Program-made: the position numbers and the translations under genes
IMG/VR virus record: IMGVR_UViG_3300033143_006101
Span: 188,877-252,876 of that record
Direction: 5' to 3' (one strand)
Length of the DNA: 64,000 nucleotides
The notes under the pieces: model-generated
Databases searched by the model: none
Told to the model about the DNA's origin: nothing
What the model saw: the letters and a program-made list of their open reading frames with translations, nothing else
Shown here: piece after piece, positions 8,126 through 64,000 of the stretch
Layout of the letters: each line of letters begins with the position of its first letter
Position numbering within the stretch: the first letter of the stretch is position 1

Positions 8126-8623
8126 TTATGTATTCTCCAATTTCTTCCTATAAAACCTACATAATTCTGAAGTGATTCTTTTAATAATATACTTTTTTAA
8201 AATTTCACTATAAGTAGTATGAAGAGATTTAGCTACTTTTTTTACTGAAATTCTATCCTCTAACCATTTACATTTACTAGAATAACTCATTACTCCATAC
8301 TTATCATTCAACTCATTAGCAAACTTTATTGTATCTTCAACTAATACCTCCGGCACACAAAAATAAAACCTGTTTGGTTGTTTAACCGGATGAGTAATTG
8401 TTTTTAAATAAGCATGCTTACGTACTTTCTCTTTTGCTTCTCTATATAAATTTGCTTTAGAAATTTTTACTTCTACTTCCACTACCTCTGAATCATTATA
8501 TGCTAAGATATCTGCAATGGATCCATAGGTAACTTCCGTAGCAGGTATATATCTTCTCTTGAATCTAAAATAATGTAAAAGAGCTGCTTTAATATATGCT
8601 GATGTGATTTTATCAGATGTCAC
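8126..8623 (-). CDS. PD-(D/E)XK / MmcB-like nuclease-fold protein
   Basis: TEV...ADILAY...EVEVKISKANL and PNRFYFCVP; start moved to GTG at 8623 to minimise overlap with the RNR gene. Confidence 0.6.
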   Translation of the reverse strand: MTSDKITSAYIKAALLHYFRFKRRYIPATEVTYGSIADILAYNDSEVVEVEVKISKANLYREAKEKVRKHAYLKTITHPVKQPNRFYFCVPEVLVEDTIKFANELNDKYGVMSYSSKCKWLEDRISVKKVAKSLHTTYSEILKKYIIKRITSELCRFYRKKLENT

Positions 8624-11606
8624 AAGCACCGCCACCACATGCGTATTCTTTACCTCCCTCAGTATTATCTTCCATTTCGTACTCACCCAACAAACCAAAA
8701 TTTACTTCTGGGAATTCTTTCATCATTTTTCTATACGTATCAGCATCTATATCTTCATAAGGAGCCAATTGATATACATGATCATCAACAGGCATAAACG
8801 TTAAACCACATACATCTTCAAAATTACTATATACCCAAGCAGCTACATCCAACCATTCATCTTCTCTAACATCAATTGTTATTGATGGATTATGCTCACA
8901 CCAAAAATTACGTACCATCCTCCAATACTCTAATTGTTGTAACGCAGAATCACCCAACACTTTAGCCCCCCTCGGTGCTTTGATAGGAAATTCTAAAACA
9001 AATCTTGTAGTATCCCCTCCTACTTCTTGAATTAACTCCATTCCTGCATCTTGCATAAGAAAAGCAAGAGGATCATTACTAGCAATCCGCACTCTTCTAA
9101 TATAACATCCACTCTTTGTTTTTCTAGTATGAGCTCCAGGAGAACAATCAACTAAAGAAGATACAGTATTATGACTTACATAAGAATTAGCTATATAAGT
9201 ATTATTTTCAGGAACCTCAAGATCTACTGTGTGTGCTACAGAATCTTCTATACCCTCAACAATATCAGGAATAAACTCTGTCATTCCAATATTATCAAGA
9301 TCTTTATATAAATTTCCCAACCCGCTTTTATGCATAGCACCATTTCGTCCTTTTAGTATTGTAATTCTATATCTCATTGCTGATCCCCAAGAAGTCTCAG
9401 TTGGTAGCATTAGTCTACAAGAACATGTATGTCCAAGTGCTCGTAATACAATAGGCAACTGCCTCGCAAGTGTTTCAGAAATAGTACATAAAATTTTATA
9501 ACCCCTACTAGAAACACAACCATCTGCATCAAAAAGACCGTCAATAAACGCTTGGATTATATGTTTAGGAGATCTTCTTATAAGAAGAGGAATATCTATA
9601 TTATTAGTCTTATTCTTTATCAAATCATTTGCCTTTAAAAAAGCTAAAAGAAATGTTGAATTAGCATATACATCTGCATTTCTACCAGATGCCCTTTCAT
9701 AAATAAAACAATCAATATTAAATAATTGTGAGATATACTCCCCAACTTTCTTTAAAGGAACCATATCATCACAACAACCCGCTATTCGTATTCCTTTCTT
9801 ATGTGTACTACCATCTCCTGCATATAGACCTAAAACATATGCTAATTTTTCATCTAAAATATCTGGTTGCTCTATCTCTTTTACATTACAATAAGGAGGC
9901 TCTACTTTAATTAATTTCTGTAGACTACCCCCAGAGTACCCGCCTATCTTATAAGGTAAACAATCACCAATGGACATTTCTCGTAATTCTTTCCACTGGT
10001 ATTCCCCATTTTGTAACACTCTAAATTTATGATTAGGTGTTGCTTCTAAAACAATACCGGATTGCATATGAACACGTTTTGTTGGTACTTCCCCATTTAC
10101 ATGAAATTTAGTAGACTTTTCATAAGATGTTTCCTGTTCCACTTCAATATCATGATCTTGCCAATCTTCTCCATGAGTATCTCCTATTTCTGCTAACTCT
10201 AAAATACCTTCCGATGTAGAAATAAGAGAATCTGTGGACAAACAACCAGATGGTTTTACACATGTAATTGCTGCTGCTCTATTTATTCCTAATTTTTCAG
10301 CATACTTTTTATTTGTTTGAATAGCTACATGTTTTAAATCAGCCAACCACTTCTTTGCTGTATCATTCACATTACCTAATACTTTATGATCCCGTAATCC
10401 AGTAAAAGAAACCCCTAAAAGCCGTTCCTCTTCACAATTCATCTTCCATTCTTTATCAACGTATTTAAATTTCGTAAATGTAGATTGCCAGGTACCGATC
10501 ATAGTAGCTATAATCACTTTTCTCTTAAGTGTTTCAAAAGTGTCTTCCGGACGAATAACCACTTCCGATAAGTTACACGTCTCTTTACTAGTCAATAATA
10601 CTTCACCACATGGATTAACACCCACAACTTTTGAGCCATCTCTCCTATCATTTTCACTTGCTTTCTTTTGTGCTGCTACCCTACTAAAAATACCTCTTTC
10701 TCCACTTTTAGAACGATAGAGGTTCTTCCATTCATCAATAAATGAAACTATATCCGGTACCCTAGTATAAGCTACAGAGTTGTTAGCGAGTTCTCGTTGT
10801 TTATTAATTTTCCAAAAATCACCCATCTTAGCATTGGCCATTTGGTTATCAGTTAGATCCGAAAGGGATATACATGCAGACCTTCTAGTTCCCCCAGCTA
10901 CAACAGCCTCCGATACTTTACATGCTATATCATGAGCATCAACAGGTTGAATTTGAAATCCTCTATTTCTTTCAGCAATATCAGTCACAAAATCAACTAA
11001 TTCTATTAAAGGGCCGGGGCCTGAGGCTCTTCCCCCAAATGTTTTTAATCTCTCCCCAAATGGGCGTACTTTTGAATAATCACATTCAAAATCCTGACCT
11101 TCCCAAAGGCATTCCAATACTCTCTCAAATCCTTTAGCCCAACCTAAACGGCTATCTTCAAAAACAATTTTTTCTATAGCAGATCCATTCTTTTCTTTAA
11201 TGGCAGGTAATTGTTGTATAAATTTTCTTTCTACACTGAAGCCTAATCCACAACCGTTCATAAGAACATAGAGGATTTCAGAAAAGTCTTTCAATTTAGT
11301 TATAGTTGTAAAAGCACAATTATAAAAAGAGAGGTTCTCAACATCCGCAGCTTTCCCAGCTGACCACAATGCTCTCATAGAAGGCATTACTTCAAGATTA
11401 TATATTGCATTAAAAACATCCTTACGTTCTTTTTCCGTAACTTTATCGCCAAGCTTCTTCTTTATATAATCACAATATCGACTTACTGTTTCATCCCAGG
11501 ACTCTCTCCTTTTTTCTTTTTCTCTCCATCTAGAATACGAACGAACATATATAAATTCTTGAAACATCGTTTCGAATATATTTTCTTTTTCTTTCTTATC
11601 CGTCAT
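8613..11606 (-). CDS. nrdJ: Class II (B12-dependent, RTPR-type) ribonucleotide reductase, intein-containing
   Basis: RESWDETVSRY, MPSMRALW, NPCGE, CNLSE, TCVKPSG-[intein]-TVS, WCEHNPSIT, C-terminal ACGGGACDI. Confidence 0.93.
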   Translation of the reverse strand: MTDKKEKENIFETMFQEFIYVRSYSRWREKEKRRESWDETVSRYCDYIKKKLGDKVTEKERKDVFNAIYNLEVMPSMRALWSAGKAADVENLSFYNCAFTTITKLKDFSEILYVLMNGCGLGFSVERKFIQQLPAIKEKNGSAIEKIVFEDSRLGWAKGFERVLECLWEGQDFECDYSKVRPFGERLKTFGGRASGPGPLIELVDFVTDIAERNRGFQIQPVDAHDIACKVSEAVVAGGTRRSACISLSDLTDNQMANAKMGDFWKINKQRELANNSVAYTRVPDIVSFIDEWKNLYRSKSGERGIFSRVAAQKKASENDRRDGSKVVGVNPCGEVLLTSKETCNLSEVVIRPEDTFETLKRKVIIATMIGTWQSTFTKFKYVDKEWKMNCEEERLLGVSFTGLRDHKVLGNVNDTAKKWLADLKHVAIQTNKKYAEKLGINRAAAITCVKPSGCLSTDSLISTSEGILELAEIGDTHGEDWQDHDIEVEQETSYEKSTKFHVNGEVPTKRVHMQSGIVLEATPNHKFRVLQNGEYQWKELREMSIGDCLPYKIGGYSGGSLQKLIKVEPPYCNVKEIEQPDILDEKLAYVLGLYAGDGSTHKKGIRIAGCCDDMVPLKKVGEYISQLFNIDCFIYERASGRNADVYANSTFLLAFLKANDLIKNKTNNIDIPLLIRRSPKHIIQAFIDGLFDADGCVSSRGYKILCTISETLARQLPIVLRALGHTCSCRLMLPTETSWGSAMRYRITILKGRNGAMHKSGLGNLYKDLDNIGMTEFIPDIVEGIEDSVAHTVDLEVPENNTYIANSYVSHNTVSSLVDCSPGAHTRKTKSGCYIRRVRIASNDPLAFLMQDAGMELIQEVGGDTTRFVLEFPIKAPRGAKVLGDSALQQLEYWRMVRNFWCEHNPSITIDVREDEWLDVAAWVYSNFEDVCGLTFMPVDDHVYQLAPYEDIDADTYRKMMKEFPEVNFGLLGEYEMEDNTEGGKEYACGGGACDI
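9168..10244 (-). mobile_element. Intein (359 aa) with LAGLIDADG endonuclease in nrdJ
   Basis: KPSG|CLSTDS ... ATPNHKF ... LGLYAGDG, DGLFDADG ... YVSHN|TVS; removal restores KPSGTVS. Confidence 0.93.
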
Positions 11607-35796: not shown

Positions 35797-38121
35797 ATGG
35801 GGAGAGCTATGCCTGATCCGTTAGATACAGCTAGTACATTTCAGGAAATGCCTTCGTTACATGGAGAAGGTAGTCAAACACCACCTGATCCATCAAAAGC
35901 TACTGGAGCACCAACTCCTATTGGTTCGGGTAAACCAATAACACCAGCAGGAAAACCTGGAGCACCACCTATGGGTGGAGCACCTGGTGGAGCGGGGATG
36001 CTCGGAGCAAAACCTGGGGCACCAAAACCTCCTGCAATATCTCCCGAAGAACAACTCAACTATGATTCACTTGATACGTTGAGGCAAGATATAACTAGAT
36101 TAATGAGAAATGATGAGATTGAAGATCTTGATTCATTAGTTGATAGATTACTAAATGAAGATTGGAGAGTTGAGAGAATAACAGACTTAATGGATTTTCG
36201 CAACTTTTCTACAGTTCAGGAATTATTTCAAGATGCCTTAAGTAAAAGCTATAAAGAAGAAGAGGAGAAGAAGAAACAAATGGGAGCACCACCACCCGCA
36301 GGTGGAACACCTCCTGGTGGAATGGGGGGCATTCCCATTGAACCTCCTAAAAAACCGGATAATGATCTAACGGGGCAAAACATGCCAAAACCGGAAGCGA
36401 ATACAAAAGGAATTATAAAAGAAGGTGTAGATCCTTTAGAAGCAAGTACTAAAAATCTAAATGTGAGGAGTGGACTTATGAAAAAAGTACTACTGAAAGA
36501 TGGTACTCTTGTAGTCAAGGAAGCAGCTTCTGCTTCTGAAGTAATTGAGGGTATCTCATCAGCAAGACGTAGAGTAGAAGCACTTATAGACGATTATAAA
36601 GATGCTTATTTAAGACATGCCGGACTTGAAGCACTTAAGAAAGAAGGCATGGGTCCTTTTGGAGACATGGGACCAGGTGGGCCTCCTGGTGGGCCTGACA
36701 TAGGCGGTGGTTTAGATCTTGGTGGACCAGATATGGGTGAACCGGATCTTGGTGGAGTATCGGGGCTTGAAGATATAGTAGGGGCTCTTAAAGATGCTAT
36801 CCAGAAACTTACCGATTGGCTTTCAAAAGGTAAAGACACTAAGAAAGACGAGGCTCTTCCTGCAGCTGATGCCGGAGATCTCGAAGATGAAATGGGTAAA
36901 GCTAAAGAACCTATGGACAAAGCAAAAGGTATTTTATCAGGACCTCCAAAGAAGAAAGACGAGGATTCCGAAGATAAAGATAAGGACAAAGATAAGAAAG
37001 AAGAAGCCGGAACTGAAGGCGATACTAAGCAAGCAGTAGCTGGTGATGCAAAGGGTGAGAATACTCCTGTTGGTTCAGATGCACCAATGAAAGTAACTAT
37101 GGGAGAAACAAAACCACCTGGAGATTCAGGACAAACTAGTAAGGAGAAAACTCAAATGAAAGATGGAGAAGGCGGAGTAAAAAAGGCTGATTTAGACGAA
37201 GTTGTAGAAACTGTTGTTGAGCGTGTTGTTGATGACGCGACTGCACCGACAGAAACTACACCGGATCCTGCACCAGAGACTACTTCTATGGAAGCAGCAC
37301 CTGAGGGTGGGGAAGGCGATGTAGCAGAACCTATTACAGCAGCGACTATCGTTGATCAGTTAGAAACACGTTTAGCAGAGCTTAAGAAAGAAGCAAATCT
37401 CTATCCATTCAAAGACCTCAACAAACAGCAAGTAGATCCTATTAACGCACAGACTGCATCAGATCAAGCATCAACAATTAACACAGAAATATCTGGTGGA
37501 AACCATGCAACTAAAGAACCTCAGCGTGGGGAAACTTTAGCACCTGGTGATATTTCAACAACTAATCCTACAGTTGGACAGGGCAATCCATCAGAAGCAC
37601 CAAACAGTAAAACTGTTAATGCTCCTGCGGCAGGCAAAGTTTCTGTTGAAGTAGCTGAGAAGATTCGTCAGTCAAGTGTTGAGAATGAAAGAGCTAAAGC
37701 AAAACTTTCTGTTGAGCTTGCATGCCAGCAGCAACTTAAGGGACTTATTGATAATCCTTTGAGAGTGGCAATGGTTAAGAATATGATTGAAGCAGGAATT
37801 GCTGAAGCATCTGCTGAAGCTATCGCATTCAACTCTTTCTTAGATGGATATGAGGAATCACAAAAACTTGTTATGAAGGAAGCTTTTGAAGAATTCATGA
37901 CCAAGGATATTGATGAGTTTATTAAAATAGCGAAAGTTACTAAAGAACATAGAGTAAAAGAAGGCTCCCAAGCGTCTGTAGAGAACGTAGAAGAAGGAAC
38001 ACGAAATAAAACCGCGAGTTTAGATTCAGCACCTCTGAGAGGATCTCAACCAAATAAGGGTCGTAAAGAGGATTATAGCAAATATTGGACAGATGTCGCT
38101 CGTGAAAGAAGAAATTGGTAA
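35797..38121 (+). CDS. Probable scaffolding/core protein
   Basis: 774-aa low-complexity Pro/Gly/acidic protein preceding the decoration and capsid genes. Confidence 0.55.
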   Translation: MGRAMPDPLDTASTFQEMPSLHGEGSQTPPDPSKATGAPTPIGSGKPITPAGKPGAPPMGGAPGGAGMLGAKPGAPKPPAISPEEQLNYDSLDTLRQDITRLMRNDEIEDLDSLVDRLLNEDWRVERITDLMDFRNFSTVQELFQDALSKSYKEEEEKKKQMGAPPPAGGTPPGGMGGIPIEPPKKPDNDLTGQNMPKPEANTKGIIKEGVDPLEASTKNLNVRSGLMKKVLLKDGTLVVKEAASASEVIEGISSARRRVEALIDDYKDAYLRHAGLEALKKEGMGPFGDMGPGGPPGGPDIGGGLDLGGPDMGEPDLGGVSGLEDIVGALKDAIQKLTDWLSKGKDTKKDEALPAADAGDLEDEMGKAKEPMDKAKGILSGPPKKKDEDSEDKDKDKDKKEEAGTEGDTKQAVAGDAKGENTPVGSDAPMKVTMGETKPPGDSGQTSKEKTQMKDGEGGVKKADLDEVVETVVERVVDDATAPTETTPDPAPETTSMEAAPEGGEGDVAEPITAATIVDQLETRLAELKKEANLYPFKDLNKQQVDPINAQTASDQASTINTEISGGNHATKEPQRGETLAPGDISTTNPTVGQGNPSEAPNSKTVNAPAAGKVSVEVAEKIRQSSVENERAKAKLSVELACQQQLKGLIDNPLRVAMVKNMIEAGIAEASAEAIAFNSFLDGYEESQKLVMKEAFEEFMTKDIDEFIKIAKVTKEHRVKEGSQASVENVEEGTRNKTASLDSAPLRGSQPNKGRKEDYSKYWTDVARERRNW

Positions 38122-39702: not shown

Positions 39703-40866
39703 ATGTGGGCAGAAGGAATTGAAAGAAAGTCCGTGGCAAATGTTACTCCAAGTAAATATGATGAGAGACTTCTTAATCCTAAAGCTTTCGGTGGAATGAA
39801 TACTGCAGGTAAGCACACTGCTTCTGCAGAAGACATGTTTAACTCTAAGGGAGAACTTAATGCTTATAGCAAAGAAGACGCTATAAATCAGCAAATGAGA
39901 TTCGCTCAACTTAGAGCTAATTACCAAAGACCTGGAAAACAAGCCCAGTCTTACTTCACACCAGAAGAAAGACAAAGAATAGTTGAATCCGTTTTTGCTG
40001 CTGATGAGCAGGAAAGACTTAGATTCGGTGCGGAGATGATCCCATTGATTCTTGACAGATTGGACTATGAAGGTTTTATTCGTCAGGTTTTTAGAACCCA
40101 TCAACTTGCACAAGGACAGATTAACTCCTATGAAAAGGACGTTAATGTTACTGCTCTTGTAATACATGAAGATGGTCAGACAATCGAAAGCGTAGTTAAA
40201 GGTAATAGAATTTTCCCACCAGAATTCTTAGTAACAGCAATGCCAAAAATTACTATCTCTGAAATCGCAACACGTCAATACGACATAGTAGATAGAACAC
40301 ATGACAAGACTACTTTCCAAATCATGCTAACTGAGGACAGAAATGGTCTTAGAGAATTGTATCAGTCAGCTACATTAGAGAACTCACTAATTAACGTGAC
40401 TTCAACAATTAGCAAGAGTGTTCTTGAAACACTACAATACGAAGTCGAAAGACACAGATTGCTCGTTGATAAGTTTATTATGAACAGAGCTGAACTTGGT
40501 GACTTGAAGAAAAATATTAACGCAATTGATTACGATCCAATCACATCTCGTGACCTGTTATTAACAGGTATATTTGGATCAATCTGGGGAGTTAACATCT
40601 ATGTAACAGCTGGTGTTGACGAAGCAGGTATTGAAAACGTATCTGTACCAGAAGGAATGATCTTCGCAGTAACAGAAGGAAGATATTTAGGAGCAATGCC
40701 TATTAGGGTTGACCTTACTGTACTTCCTGCAGATCAATTCATTTTTGGAGCACCTCAATATGGTTGGTTGTTCGTTGAGCAAATTTCTCAAGTTGTTGTT
40801 AATCCAAGATCTGTAGCGTGTGCCGTTAAGAGCAGTGCGACCGTGCCTCAGTGGATGAGTGCATAG
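39703..40866 (+). CDS. Major capsid protein (HK97-like)
   Basis: 387 aa, highly expressed-type codons, RLDYEGFIRQ / PEF...P.I...EI..RQYDIVDR / GIFGSIWGVNI pattern; followed by a strong terminator. Confidence 0.85.
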   Translation: MWAEGIERKSVANVTPSKYDERLLNPKAFGGMNTAGKHTASAEDMFNSKGELNAYSKEDAINQQMRFAQLRANYQRPGKQAQSYFTPEERQRIVESVFAADEQERLRFGAEMIPLILDRLDYEGFIRQVFRTHQLAQGQINSYEKDVNVTALVIHEDGQTIESVVKGNRIFPPEFLVTAMPKITISEIATRQYDIVDRTHDKTTFQIMLTEDRNGLRELYQSATLENSLINVTSTISKSVLETLQYEVERHRLLVDKFIMNRAELGDLKKNINAIDYDPITSRDLLLTGIFGSIWGVNIYVTAGVDEAGIENVSVPEGMIFAVTEGRYLGAMPIRVDLTVLPADQFIFGAPQYGWLFVEQISQVVVNPRSVACAVKSSATVPQWMSA

Positions 40867-51840: not shown

Positions 51841-51979
51841 GGGGGAGTGCAGGCCAATGGTTGGCCATCTGATTTTGGGTCAGACAAAGCACTGCATTAA
51901 AGCTGTATCAACTTGAACCTTTTAGGTTCCATAAGAAACCAGCGTACAAGCATATCGGTTCGATTCCGACTCTCCCCCA
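51841..51979 (+). tRNA. tRNA-like gene 1 (TTG anticodon) with ~70-nt variable-loop module
   Basis: GGGGGAG/CTCCCCC, ggcc/ggcc D stem, tctga-ttTTGgg-tcaga, GGTTCGATTCC; insert 51885-51954. Confidence 0.8.
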
Positions 51980-52199: not shown

Positions 52200-52342
52200 G
52201 GCGAAGTAGCCAAGTTGGGTAAAGGCACTAGAATTGAAATCTAGCTAACAGCAGACTAACTAAATTAACTTGAACTCAGAAGAGTTCCCCATAACTTAGT
52301 TTACAAGCAAAATTATCGATGGTTCGAGTCCATCCTTCGCCA
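52200..52342 (+). tRNA. tRNA-like gene 2 (TGA anticodon) with 73-nt variable-loop module
   Basis: GGCGAAG/CTTCGCC, ctaga-atTGAaa-tctag, gatgg-TTCGAGT-ccatc; insert 52245-52317. Confidence 0.8.
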
Positions 52343-52344
52343 AT

Positions 52345-52481
52345 GCCCGAGAAGCTCATGGAGAGCACTTTTTCTACTAAAAAAGAGGTAACAATTCTTT
52401 TGGGTTATTTCAACTTGAACTCTTTAGAGTTCCATCGGAACTAACTTACAAGCATTTGCCGTTCGATTCGGCACTCGGGCT
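52345..52481 (+). tRNA. tRNA-like gene 3 (ambiguous ACT / 8-nt loop) with 71-nt variable-loop module
   Basis: GCCCGAG/CTCGGGC, 5-nt D-loop, ctttt-tctactaa-aaaag, tgccg-TTCGATT-cggca; insert 52386-52456. Confidence 0.75.
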
Positions 52482-60968: not shown

Positions 60969-61574
60969 ATGAAAAAATATACCAAAGAAGAAAAACAGCA
61001 AATTGAAAAACTAGTACGTTTTGGAAAAACAAATAAAGAAATTCCTGCTTTATTAAATAGACCCTTCGAGTCTATTAAAACTTTTATAGCACGTAATTGT
61101 TCTAGGTATAAAATAGTAAAAGATAGTAAAACAAAAGCTATAACTTATGAAATAGATAAAAAGACTGGTTGCTGGATTTGTGCAAGTCATTACTGTACTA
61201 CTGATTACCTCTATATTCAATCAGATGGTACAAAAGTAGGTTTTCATAGAAAAGCTTTAGAAGAAAAATTAGGAAGACGTATAAAAAAAGGAATGTACGC
61301 TTGTCATATTTGTGATAATATATCGTGTATTAATCCTGATCATTTGTATGAAGGAACACATAAAAGTAATATGTTAGATAAAGTAAACCGAAATCGCCAA
61401 GCAAAAGGGGAGTAAAATGGCAAAGCTAAATTAAAGGATAGTCAAGTTAAAAAATTAAAAAAGGTAGTATGTAATAAAAGTAGAGAAGAACTTAAAATAA
61501 TTGCTAAAAAATATAATGTAGATGTTAGAACAATAGAACATATTAAAAATGGTCATACTTGGAAGTATTTATAA
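60969..61574 (+). pseudogene. HNH endonuclease with in-frame TAA (61413-61415) before its C-terminal HTH
   Basis: ACHICDNISCINPDHLYEGTHKSNMLD; KGE*NGKAKL...IAKKYNV..RTI..IKNGHTWKYL. Confidence 0.7.
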
Positions 61575-61643
61575 ATAGTATAAGAATATTCAATCAATTT
61601 ATTTTTGATTAGGGTATAAAGTCTGGCCACACAACCAGATAAT

Positions 61644-61730
61644 AAGGGGGCGAGTAGAGTGATAAGTGCTCCACGCTGACTTTATGTTAGCTAACGCCTG
61701 TGCGGTGGATGACTCTACTCTTTCCCCCTT
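61644..61730 (+). ncRNA. 87-nt branched hairpin RNA candidate
   Basis: AAGGGGG/CCCCCTT, GAGTAGAGT/ACTCTACTC and TCCAC/GTGGA stems enclose two small hairpins. Confidence 0.55.
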
Positions 61731-62724
61731 AAAAGGAGAGAAGATATGGATGTAAAAGTAGAGATAACAATTAAAAATGAATTTGAACAAATATCAAGAA
61801 GTGTTTCAGAACTAAAAGATTTTGATAATGATTGTATTTTAGATGGTACGACAACTGTAATAGACGAAATTATACAACATGTTTATCAAGCTATACTAGC
61901 ATTGGGTTATACACCTGAAACAGTTGATAAGTATATCAATAGAGAAGGAATATGAGTAACGAGATTATAGAAGAGTTTTTAGTAGATAAAGTAGACAAAG
62001 CATTAGCTGATTATTCAAGTCTTTTAGATCAATTGAATAGTACAGATGAAATTGATCAAGTAAAGTTTGAGAAGGGTACTGATAATCTTTTAGAAGAGTA
62101 TGAAGAAGTAATGTATTACGCCGATACTTTTCAACAAAACCGGCAAGATTCTGATAAGTATTATGAAGTATTGAAGTGTGTGGATTTATTAGCAGACACA
62201 CATAGATCTTTTATAAGTTGTTTAGAAAAAATATTAAGAGAAGAAGGAAGAAGAAAATAATGTATGACAAAACAAGGCATAAGATTAAATAAAAGGAGAT
62301 GTAATGAATGATATCCTTGAAAAGTTAGCAGATTTACATCATCAAGCAACTGAAGAAAAATCTCATTACTATGTTGGTGCGTGCATTAGAGAAGCTATGT
62401 CAGAAATAATGAAACTAAGAGAAAAAATAGTGGAGGAAATCAGTATGTCAGTAGATAAAATACCAAAGTATGAGAATGCTCGAAAGGGGGAAGAATGTAA
62501 ATGCCCACACTGTGATAATTCTTTTCATATAAAAGGTAATTACTGTGGATTGTGTGGACGGAAAGGGTAATGTACTACATAACTAAACTGGGAGATATAA
62601 AAATAGTAAAAAAGGACTCTGAATTTCTAACACAAGAAAGTCTTTGGAAATGGTGTATAGGTATGGGAGAGAAAGGATATAAGATTGAAAAGGAATATGA
62701 ACCAGGGGAGCATAAGGCGATAAG

Positions 62725-63144
62725 ATGACTGTAGGATACAAAAGATTGTGTGGTTTTTATGATCATCCTAATGCAGATAAATACGGAGTTATTTTAGAGC
62801 ATAGGCTAGTAATGTCTCAGAAACTGGGAAGACCATTAAAGAAAAATGAAACAGTACACCATATTAATGATGATACTTTTGATGATACTTTTGATAATCG
62901 ACCAGAGAATTTAGAAATATATACTAATGAAGAGCATGCAAGAAAACATGCATTAGAAAGAGGAAAACTAGTTATTGAAATAGAATGTAATTTCTGTGGT
63001 AGTACTTTTGAATTAGATTTATCTCAATATAATTCAAAAGTTAAACAAGGTTATAAAAATTTTTATTGTAATAGGTCTTGCATGGGAAAAGGACAATGGA
63101 ATAAACATCTTTTCAAAAATAAAAAACAAGCGGATGTGGTGTAA
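62725..63144 (+). CDS. HNH endonuclease; stop lies inside tRNA-Gly
   Basis: HPNA...EHRLVMSQKLGRPL...VHHIN..DNRPENLE, with a 12-bp tandem duplication (DDTF x2). Confidence 0.8.
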   Translation: MTVGYKRLCGFYDHPNADKYGVILEHRLVMSQKLGRPLKKNETVHHINDDTFDDTFDNRPENLEIYTNEEHARKHALERGKLVIEIECNFCGSTFELDLSQYNSKVKQGYKNFYCNRSCMGKGQWNKHLFKNKKQADVV

Positions 63145-63201
63145 GAGGAAGCATTAGAGTCTTCCAAACTCTGGGTACGAGATCGTGGCTCGTCATCCGC
63201 T
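63130..63201 (+). tRNA. tRNA-Gly(TCC)
   Basis: GCGGATG/CATCCGC, U73, agagt-ctTCCaa-actct; atypical T-loop ATCGTGG. Confidence 0.9.
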
Positions 63202-63230
63202 AATTAAAAATTAAACTAAGGAGGTATTTT

Positions 63231-63410
63231 ATGTGGGCTAAAAAAGGAGAAAGAGGAGAAGGTAAAGGAAAAGGAGGACCTAGACAACAAGACATGGGTG
63301 CAATTTATTGTGAATGTCCTAAATGTTCATACAAAACAAAGCATGATAAAGGAATACCATGTTCTTCAAAATCTTGTCCTAAATGTAATATACCGTTAGT
63401 GGGTAAATAA
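63231..63410 (+). CDS. 59-aa zinc-finger peptide
   Basis: AAGGAGGT RBS; CECPKC...HDKGIPC...CPKC. Confidence 0.65.
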   Translation: MWAKKGERGEGKGKGGPRQQDMGAIYCECPKCSYKTKHDKGIPCSSKSCPKCNIPLVGK

Positions 63411-63416
63411 TTGTAT

Positions 63417-63488
63417 ACGGTTGTAGCTCAACGATAGAGTACTTGTTTTACCAAGCAGGAGACGGGCGTTCAATTCGCCCCAACCGCT
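63417..63488 (+). tRNA. Gly-type tRNA with 8-nt anticodon loop (ACC/UACC) and A1:C72 mismatch
   Basis: ACGGTTG/CAACCGC-T; cttgt-tttaccaa-gcagg; gggcg-TTCAATT-cgccc. Confidence 0.75.
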
Positions 63489-63512
63489 AATTAAATAAAG
63501 GAGAAAAATGAA

Positions 63513-63788
63513 ATGGAAAAAGAAATGAACAAAGCAGGAAAAGAATCCCGCACTTTATCTAGAATAGATTTACTAAAAGATAAAGTAGATACTATTGAGA
63601 GTAAGTTAGGAGCTCTTACAGAGCAACTAAATCCTTTGATGGTTTGCCCTCCTCCAAGCGTTGGTGAAGGGAACATGAAAGAAGCTGAAGACCGCTCTCG
63701 TGTAATCACAGAGTTGGATGATTTAAGTAATAGACTACAAGATATTATAAATGCAATAGAAGATGTTAGGGATAGGTTAGAGATATGA
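63513..63788 (+). CDS. Coiled-coil hypothetical protein
   Basis: AAGGAG RBS, 91 aa. Confidence 0.55.
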   Translation: MEKEMNKAGKESRTLSRIDLLKDKVDTIESKLGALTEQLNPLMVCPPPSVGEGNMKEAEDRSRVITELDDLSNRLQDIINAIEDVRDRLEI

Positions 63789-64000
63789 TGTTAAATGCCA
63801 ATATGTTATTTAAAACATTGTAGTCACCCTCCTGTAAAAAATTAAAAATGCCTGGTTTCAGTGAAGGCACTTTAAATTTTTTCCTAGAGGGAAATGTATT
63901 TATTAAGGAATATGACTGAATATCGTTTAATTACGGCTTAATACAAGCGATTTAAAACTATATACTGAGATATAATAATCAATATCTCTGGGAAGAATAT

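Follow-up and report, generated by a model that had tools for sequence, protein, structure and literature searches.

The tRNA gene at positions 63417-63488 of the window, the 64-kb stretch of phage DNA analysed here, is well supported as a member of a viral tRNA-Gly(ACC) class, but with its own U31-U33 run expanded by one U, giving an anticodon loop of eight nucleotides. Our preferred explanation, which we hold with about even confidence, is that the gene was damaged recently and is now a weak or inactive copy, dispensable to the phage.

The phage genome

The window forms the final 64 kb of an IMG/VR virus contig of 252,876 bp (G000; 33% G+C). Since the contig ends repeat over 72 nt, the assembly is circular. 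After removal of this terminal repeat, the circularised genome is ~37 nt longer at the junction than a second IMG/VR contig, L003, an excess that is either a short direct repeat or an assembly artefact of the ends. Stop-to-stop ORFs of at least 100 aa under translation table 11 add up to 234 kb, or 92% of the genome length; thus, the phage uses the standard code and an alternative genetic code was ruled out.

PHROG matches included a portal protein, a major head protein (39703-40866) that is 25-38% identical to those of the nearest cultured phages, a ribonucleotide reductase and SbcCD-like nucleases. The reductase is encoded by an ORF of 997 aa (window 8613-11606, minus strand) that carries an endonuclease-like insert (PHROG 4645, residues 584-768), and a 601-aa thymidylate-synthase-like ORF that neighbours the tRNA gene (G000 599-2404, locus L033) contains a LAGLIDADG domain; both inserts are probably inteins or homing-endonuclease insertions. 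The tRNA array spans the contig junction, is interspersed with HNH endonuclease genes and serves all 20 amino acids through a minimal set of anticodons, and none of the phage's tRNAs encodes CCA.

The stretch that adjoins the junction (63804-64000 of the window) is non-coding. When 61000-64000 (3,001 letters) was searched against sequencing runs at a 5% word share, three sediment or hydrothermal-vent metagenome runs were found, and only 63804-64000 was present in them, on short contigs. The three runs are unrelated and share one A>G difference at 63886. The segment may belong to low-coverage relatives or may be a conserved regulatory piece, both being possible.

A glycine tRNA gene with an enlarged anticodon loop

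The features of the gene and its neighbour, all on the plus strand of the window, are as follows.

63417..63488, +: glycine-type (ACC class) tRNA gene with an 8-nt anticodon loop, no CCA encoded (Rfam, RNAfold, ARAGORN)
63417-63423 / 63481-63487, +: acceptor stem with A1·C72, C2-G71 and G3-C70
63417..63417, +: A1, mismatched with C72 (63487); G in 33/33 canonical class members
63426-63440, +: D arm
63434..63434, +: A at the D-loop G19 position; G18-G19 invariant in the class
63442-63446 / 63455-63459, +: anticodon stem CUUGU / GCAGG
63446..63449, +: four-T run (U31, extra U, U32, U33) that holds the one-base expansion; a single inserted column relative to 33 canonical members
63447..63454, +: anticodon loop UUUACCAA with ACC at 63450-63452; the canonical UUACCAA layout plus one U
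63464-63480, +: T arm with a canonical UUCAAUU loop
63488, +: U73
63130..63201, +: neighbouring tRNA-Gly(UCC) with G1-C72, C2-G71, G3-C70 and U73; T loop AUCGUGG

Direct reading of the plus strand confirmed all elements given in the preliminary description, namely the A1:C72 mismatch, C2-G71, G3-C70, U73 and the 8-nt loop. Rfam recognized the gene as a tRNA (RF00005, 47.3 bits, above the gathering score of 29; E 1.5e-7 for 17 kb), flagged A1·C72 and placed one inserted base in the anticodon loop. The minimum-energy structure calculated by RNAfold was a cloverleaf (z = -2.9), with 20 of the 21 stem pairs intact, a perfect T arm and a variable loop of 4 nt. In Rfam score the gene does not fall behind the phage's tRNAs for Trp, Gly(UCC) and Tyr, and it is packed tightly between ORFs, as are the working tRNAs of the array. 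No promoter or terminator dedicated to it was found.

The 7-nt anticodon loop expected of tRNAs is not present. A central G30-C40 pair fixes the register of the 18-nt anticodon arm, so that the loop can be drawn with 8, 6 or 4 nt and never with 7. Because of this even loop, ARAGORN detects the gene at a lowered threshold only, with a two-base anticodon: it was missed at default settings and reported as tRNA-?(Val|Gly) at the 90% threshold (-ps90), while in silico deletion of one T yielded a default call of tRNA-Gly(acc).

We then compared the acceptor stem with those of 84 tRNAs from the phage and four relatives. The two best matches were the tRNA-Gly(UCC) of the phage itself and that of relative G002 (11/14 positions each, both with U73), which bears out the glycine identity proposed earlier. 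A reading as tRNA-Val (UAC with C37) was ruled out by U73 and the glycine-type acceptor stem. The phage's own tRNA-Gly(UCC) has a T loop, AUCGUGG, that deviates from UUCRANY, and reaches only 45.5 bits.

The gene recurs in contig L003, which stems from another sample and differs from the phage by one mismatch in 13.9 kb; it is identical there, including the four-T run. This near-identity argues against an assembly error, yet carries no evolutionary information.

A viral class of tRNA-Gly(ACC)

IMG/VR was scanned with a pattern that combined the loop string, the T-loop consensus and a glycine 3' end (CGC plus U73). The scan returned 91 stretches versus ~4 expected by chance. Among the 81 matches that could be evaluated, 79 were canonical tRNA-Gly(ACC) genes, one was a chance hit and one was L003. 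Thus, 79 viral contigs bear the same tRNA with the ordinary loop UUACCAA, and the suggestion that the anticodon loop be read as U33-ACC-AA held up. In these 79 genes the pattern string begins at U31, which pairs with A39 or G39, and ARAGORN at default settings called tRNA-Gly(acc) in all of them (79/79). Only the L003 copy among the 80 tRNAs found has an 8-nt loop; the other 79 have 7 nt. Since the 79 contigs reduce to 33 distinct sequences with rather different bodies, the class is broad. Its closest member shares 54 of 72 bases with the 63417-63488 gene, compared with at most 50 for any tRNA of the phage or its relatives.

A MAFFT alignment of the 33 canonical members with the gene allowed us to list the invariant features that had not been set by the search pattern: G1, C2, G3, U8, G18, G19, A21 and the length of the anticodon loop. 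The gene breaks exactly three of them, by G1→A, G19→A and one extra U in U31-U33. It thus shares C2-G71, G3-C70, U73, the canonical T loop and an ACC flanked by U33 and A37-A38 with the class, and its 4-nt variable loop is frequent there. It differs in having A1·C72 for G1-C72, CGAU for the CGGU or UGGU that holds G18-G19, and one U more than the 7-nt UUACCAA loop closed by U31. The location also fits, in a phage tRNA array and close to tRNA-Gly(UCC), which ends 215 nt upstream. In the loci that we fetched, arrays with tRNA-Gly(ACC) contain up to 24 tRNAs. It occurs together with tRNA-Gly(UCC) in 18 of these loci, and in 8 of the 18 the two genes are immediate neighbours. Within these contigs (L055-L133), a GCC anticodon occurs in only 2 loci, and other A34 tRNAs accompany tRNA-Gly(ACC), namely Ser ACU, Val AAC, Thr AGU and Leu AAG.

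The preliminary description had called such anticodons very rare in bacteria. In line with this, the same pattern applied to one genome for each of 185,579 prokaryotic species gave 30 matches (L147-L176) versus ~26 expected by chance. Just two or three of these are genuine tRNA-Gly(ACC) genes, one of which lies on a small contig of a metagenome-assembled genome and is identical in tRNA sequence to that of a viral contig. Bacteria and archaea nearly lack A34 tRNAs other than tRNA-Arg, and eukaryotes have no tRNA-Gly(ACC), although an engineered tRNA-Gly(ACC) functions during elongation (PMC4928997). This engineered tRNA and the Mycoplasma tRNA-Thr(AGU) resemble the phage tRNA in carrying an A34, unmodified in their case, in a four-codon box, but their loops are normal and their decoding range has been measured (PMC11066159, PMC4928997). 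Glycine tRNAs of the nearest cultured phages, as far as inspected or seen annotated, are UCC or CCC, and a literature search revealed no paper describing a phage tRNA-Gly(ACC) class. It looks like tRNA-Gly(ACC) is a virus-specific isoacceptor class.

Conservation among relatives

Relatives of the phage were found through the major head protein. They comprise 17 contigs, including a complete 236-kb genome, with 66-88% identity except for a distant one at 38%. Conservation of the 8-nt loop had been proposed as a check, but none of these 17 contigs contained an ortholog of the gene or any even-loop tRNA; only the near-identical L003 has it. Where relatives have glycine tRNAs, G002 and G003 included, the anticodon is UCC only. 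A 17-nt match in G001 turned out to be coding DNA. Patterns that left the loop unconstrained, applied in three viral scans and one metagenome scan, retrieved only L003 and two chance matches in coding DNA, and a blastn search of 50,697 phage records with the tRNA gave no match. Synteny was of no help: the downstream 91-aa ORF is an orphan, and no useful relatives were found for the thymidylate-synthase-like neighbour. With no ortholog in the relatives, the gene is lineage-specific and dispensable within its phage group. For the contrary outcome named in the preliminary description, ordinary 7-nt GCC/GCT loops, the result was mixed: wider relatives do have 7-nt loops, but around ACC and not GCC.

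Other tRNA features were noted in the relatives. The tRNA-Gly(UCC) and tRNA-Trp(CCA) genes of G002 and G003 are 79-81 nt long and have a short extra hairpin in the variable region (e.g. GCGAAAGC; L025 15168-15246 and 14991-15071, L027 3943-4022 and 3854-3933), which is unusual for these class I tRNAs. Further tRNA-like genes carry a ~50-nt insert with the motifs CCTTTT..ACTTGAC..GTACGGA that replaces or splits the anticodon arm (L026, G002 36874-36997 and the next gene downstream; L027, G003 107861-108114), and a motif GGTACGGA..GGTTATC recurs between such insert-bearing genes. G001, the closest large relative, encodes a tRNA with a CUA anticodon, of the amber-suppressor type, far from its array (L024 901-974; G001 123401-123472, minus strand).

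The proposed parallel in a second tRNA-like gene

A parallel 8-nt loop had been described for another locus of the window.

52345..52480, +: 'tRNA-like gene 3', with acceptor, D and T arms, a weak U/A-only anticodon hairpin and a ~70-nt arm that holds a conserved element

The string UCUACUAA is indeed present at 52373-52380, between a run of five U and a run of six A, and these flanking runs make the register of the loop ambiguous. If the stem is moved over by one base, it has 5 bp (U·G and four U-A) and closes a 7-nt loop, CUACUAA (52374-52380), with anticodon ACU. Thus, the string stands, but the 8-nt loop depends on the choice of register, the 7-nt one being equally drawable. CUACUAA is also the loop of a canonical tRNA-Ser(ACU) in two Gly(ACC) phage arrays (two contigs, one tRNA sequence), and three further such arrays, which share one sequence, have a tRNA-Ser(ACU) with the loop UUACUAA. 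Even at E 10, Rfam returned no tRNA for gene 3, and the discriminator of gene 3 is U, versus the G of serine tRNAs. Given the 7-nt register, the Rfam result, the U discriminator and the ~70-nt arm, gene 3 is poor evidence for a shared 8-nt design. What it has in common with the 63417-63488 gene is A34, a feature that recurs in phage arrays.

The conserved element of gene 3, ~41 nt in length (ACTTGAAC), consists of a GAACC/GGTTC or GAACTC/GAGTTC hairpin with compensating changes, a spacer of 13-15 nt and TACAAGC. Four copies were found, each inside a tRNA-like gene (window 51911-51951, 52268-52308 and 52413-52453; G000 172897-172936, minus strand, corresponding to L032 4898-4937). Three lie in the variable region and one in the anticodon loop, which ARAGORN reads as a 63-nt intron in tRNA-Pro(UGG). 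RNAalifold yielded no consensus for the four copies, since MAFFT had misaligned the hairpin, and a viral scan for the element in other contigs gave chance matches only. Candidate identities are an intron-like insert, an arm that binds protein and a small mobile element. Partial copies flank a tRNA-Asn(AUU) outside the window (G000 173028-173100, minus strand; L032 5028-5100) that has a 7-nt loop and scores 61 bits in Rfam, but contains A1·A72 and A6·C67 mismatches; it is part of a second, small group of tRNA genes that lies ~2.3 kb away from a transposase-like gene.

Recent damage as the preferred explanation

To account for the structure of the 63417-63488 gene, we propose that one U was gained in the U31-U33 homopolymer within this phage lineage, most simply by replication slippage, and that two G-to-A transitions hit the class-invariant positions G1 and G19. 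G1-C72 is an identity pair for glycyl-tRNA synthetase (GlyRS), and G19 pairs with C56 at the elbow of the tRNA. Three independent changes, at the three kinds of position of greatest importance (a synthetase identity pair, the elbow pair and the loop size), favour recent damage under relaxed selection in an AT-rich genome, as do the G-to-A direction of two of them and the absence of conservation. Since the neighbouring tRNA-Gly(UCC) and host tRNAs cover the GGN codons, a damaged copy would be dispensable. Weighing against damage, the only second copy is near-identical and thus offers no comparative test of selection. Other tRNAs of the phage are odd as well, such as tRNA-Gly(UCC) with its T loop, so the host may tolerate deviations.

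We infer the loss or weakness of function, and likewise the mode of decoding. If the tRNA is used, it would be co-transcribed with the flanking ORFs, excised by host RNase P and RNase Z and completed with CCA by the host. GlyRS would then charge it, probably more weakly than usual, via C2-G71, G3-C70, U73, C35 and C36. With the enlarged loop in its 3' register, GGU would be read as a triplet, similar to the reading of CUN by yeast mitochondrial tRNA-Thr1, with at most occasional +1 slips on GGU-A.

Alternative explanations

The intact remaining stems, the tight ORF packing and the yeast precedent leave room for a working tRNA. In this explanation, which we consider rather unlikely, the gene encodes an elongator tRNA-Gly that reads GGU (perhaps GGN via an unmodified A34) as a triplet and is kept by selection as a supplement for a frequently used codon. 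GGT makes up 39% of the glycine codons (1696/4351) and is the second most used one of the phage, and the widespread canonical ACC class indicates that such a job exists. The closest known case is the yeast mitochondrial tRNA-Thr1(UAG), which has a natural 8-nt loop, UUUUAGGU, and reads triplets; its authors ruled out quadruplet reading because in-frame quadruplets are abundant (PMC3113583), an argument that applies here too. Both loops follow the layout UUU-NNN-RN, in which the triplet is preceded by three U and followed by two bases (UUU-ACC-AA in the phage, UUU-UAG-GU in yeast), and hence share an extra pyrimidine 5' of U33 and a triplet in the 3' register. However, the yeast tRNA belongs to an organelle, is conserved across 10 yeast species, descends from tRNA-His and is linked to a codon reassignment (PMC3113583), whereas the phage loop is unconserved among relatives, occurs under the standard code and has a putative decoding function. 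The loss of G1 and G19, the lack of an ortholog in relatives and the presence of such a loop in just 1 of 80 class members, which looks accidental rather than designed, also speak against a selected triplet reader.

It is less probable still that the gene produces a non-decoding, tRNA-like RNA, acting as a decoy or sponge for a tRNA-targeting nuclease or modification enzyme, or as an off-ribosome donor of glycine. All three changes weaken use by the ribosome or EF-Tu while the fold is kept. A donor role would fit the 1:72 mismatch and the missing G19; the non-proteinogenic tRNA-Gly of Staphylococcus likewise lacks G18-G19. Yet no conservation was seen, no defence system or target is known for tRNA-Gly in the host, and searches of the phage genome for a class IIb synthetase core, a CCA-adding enzyme and a TadA-like deaminase came up empty. 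A T4 Rnl1 ligase profile matched neither the phage nor any of 14 control genomes, which makes its blank in the phage uninformative. Phage tRNAs do counter anticodon nucleases by changes in the loop (PMC10264068, PMC11464382, PMC11555353). Those of T5 and others share with our phage an array for all 20 amino acids and a deviation in the anticodon loop (here A34 for G34), but theirs are substitutions within 7-nt loops with shown resistance, and no change of loop size was described (PMC10264068).

The preliminary description had likened both loops to quadruplet, +1 frameshift suppressors of the sufD type. We therefore determined codon contexts in 328 long non-overlapping ORFs (71,300 codons). In-frame GGT is followed by A in 673 of 1,696 cases (39.7%) and AGT in 474 of 1,265 (37.5%), compared with 35.3% A overall, so neither quadruplet is avoided. 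With ~670 and ~470 such sites, an efficient quadruplet reader would damage most phage proteins. We also scanned for +1 junctions, at which the end of a long 0-frame ORF meets the start of a long +1-frame ORF, and detected no enrichment of GGTA (rank 36 of 256) or AGTA (rank 141 of 256). The 14 candidate fusions at GGTA or AGTA were ordinary gene junctions: most have a start codon within ~40 nt, several a purine-rich stretch 5' of it, and two pairs searched against PHROGs fell into different families. Without avoidance of GGU-A and without a +1 target, frameshift suppression is unsupported.

Consequently, we regard it as very unlikely that the tRNA is a natural +1 decoder, with UACC acting on GGU-A, for programmed frameshifting or disturbance of host translation. 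UACC allows ACC:GGU pairing and, once shifted by +1, UAC:GUA pairing, and the sufD/SufB2-type suppressors, one of which is likewise a glycine tRNA, are classically marked by an 8-nt loop. Those suppressors (Salmonella tRNA-Gly CCCC and tRNA-Pro) are, however, reportedly laboratory mutants with a repeated anticodon base that read monotonous quadruplets. In the phage tRNA the extra base is a U in the 5' run, outside the anticodon, and there is no slippery quadruplet. Amber suppression, suggested by a CUA in the loop of gene 3, conflicts with the 92% coding under table 11, by which TAG is not read as sense, and with the position of that CUA, which is out of the anticodon register and not at 34-36. 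Finally, it is highly improbable that the fourth T is an assembly or sequencing error in a plain tRNA-Gly(ACC), because, even though the extra base lies within a homopolymer, T4 is present in two separate IMG/VR contigs, 4-base runs are not error-prone on short-read platforms, and the changes of G1 and G19 would remain.

Implications

If the gene is a decaying copy, it is a caution that oddities of loop size in phage tRNA arrays can be slippage accidents. It is possible, though doubtful in our view, that the enlarged loop is functional and that the tRNA-Gly, with its 8-nt loop, decodes GGU (or GGN) as a triplet or causes +1 shifting at a low, tuned level. This would then be the first natural non-organellar example, in a tRNA-Gly(ACC) lineage that is previously undescribed, essentially specific to viruses and takes the place of the cellular GCC isoacceptor. 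Natural 8-nt anticodon loops are very rare and bear on how the ribosome keeps its frame and on the engineering of quadruplet codons, for which a working phage tRNA of this kind would be a ready-made test object. Glycine tRNAs with ACC recur in phage tRNA arrays, which poses the question of why phages prefer A34 over G34. Candidate reasons are escape from tRNA-targeting defence, AT-rich codon use and avoidance of host modification.
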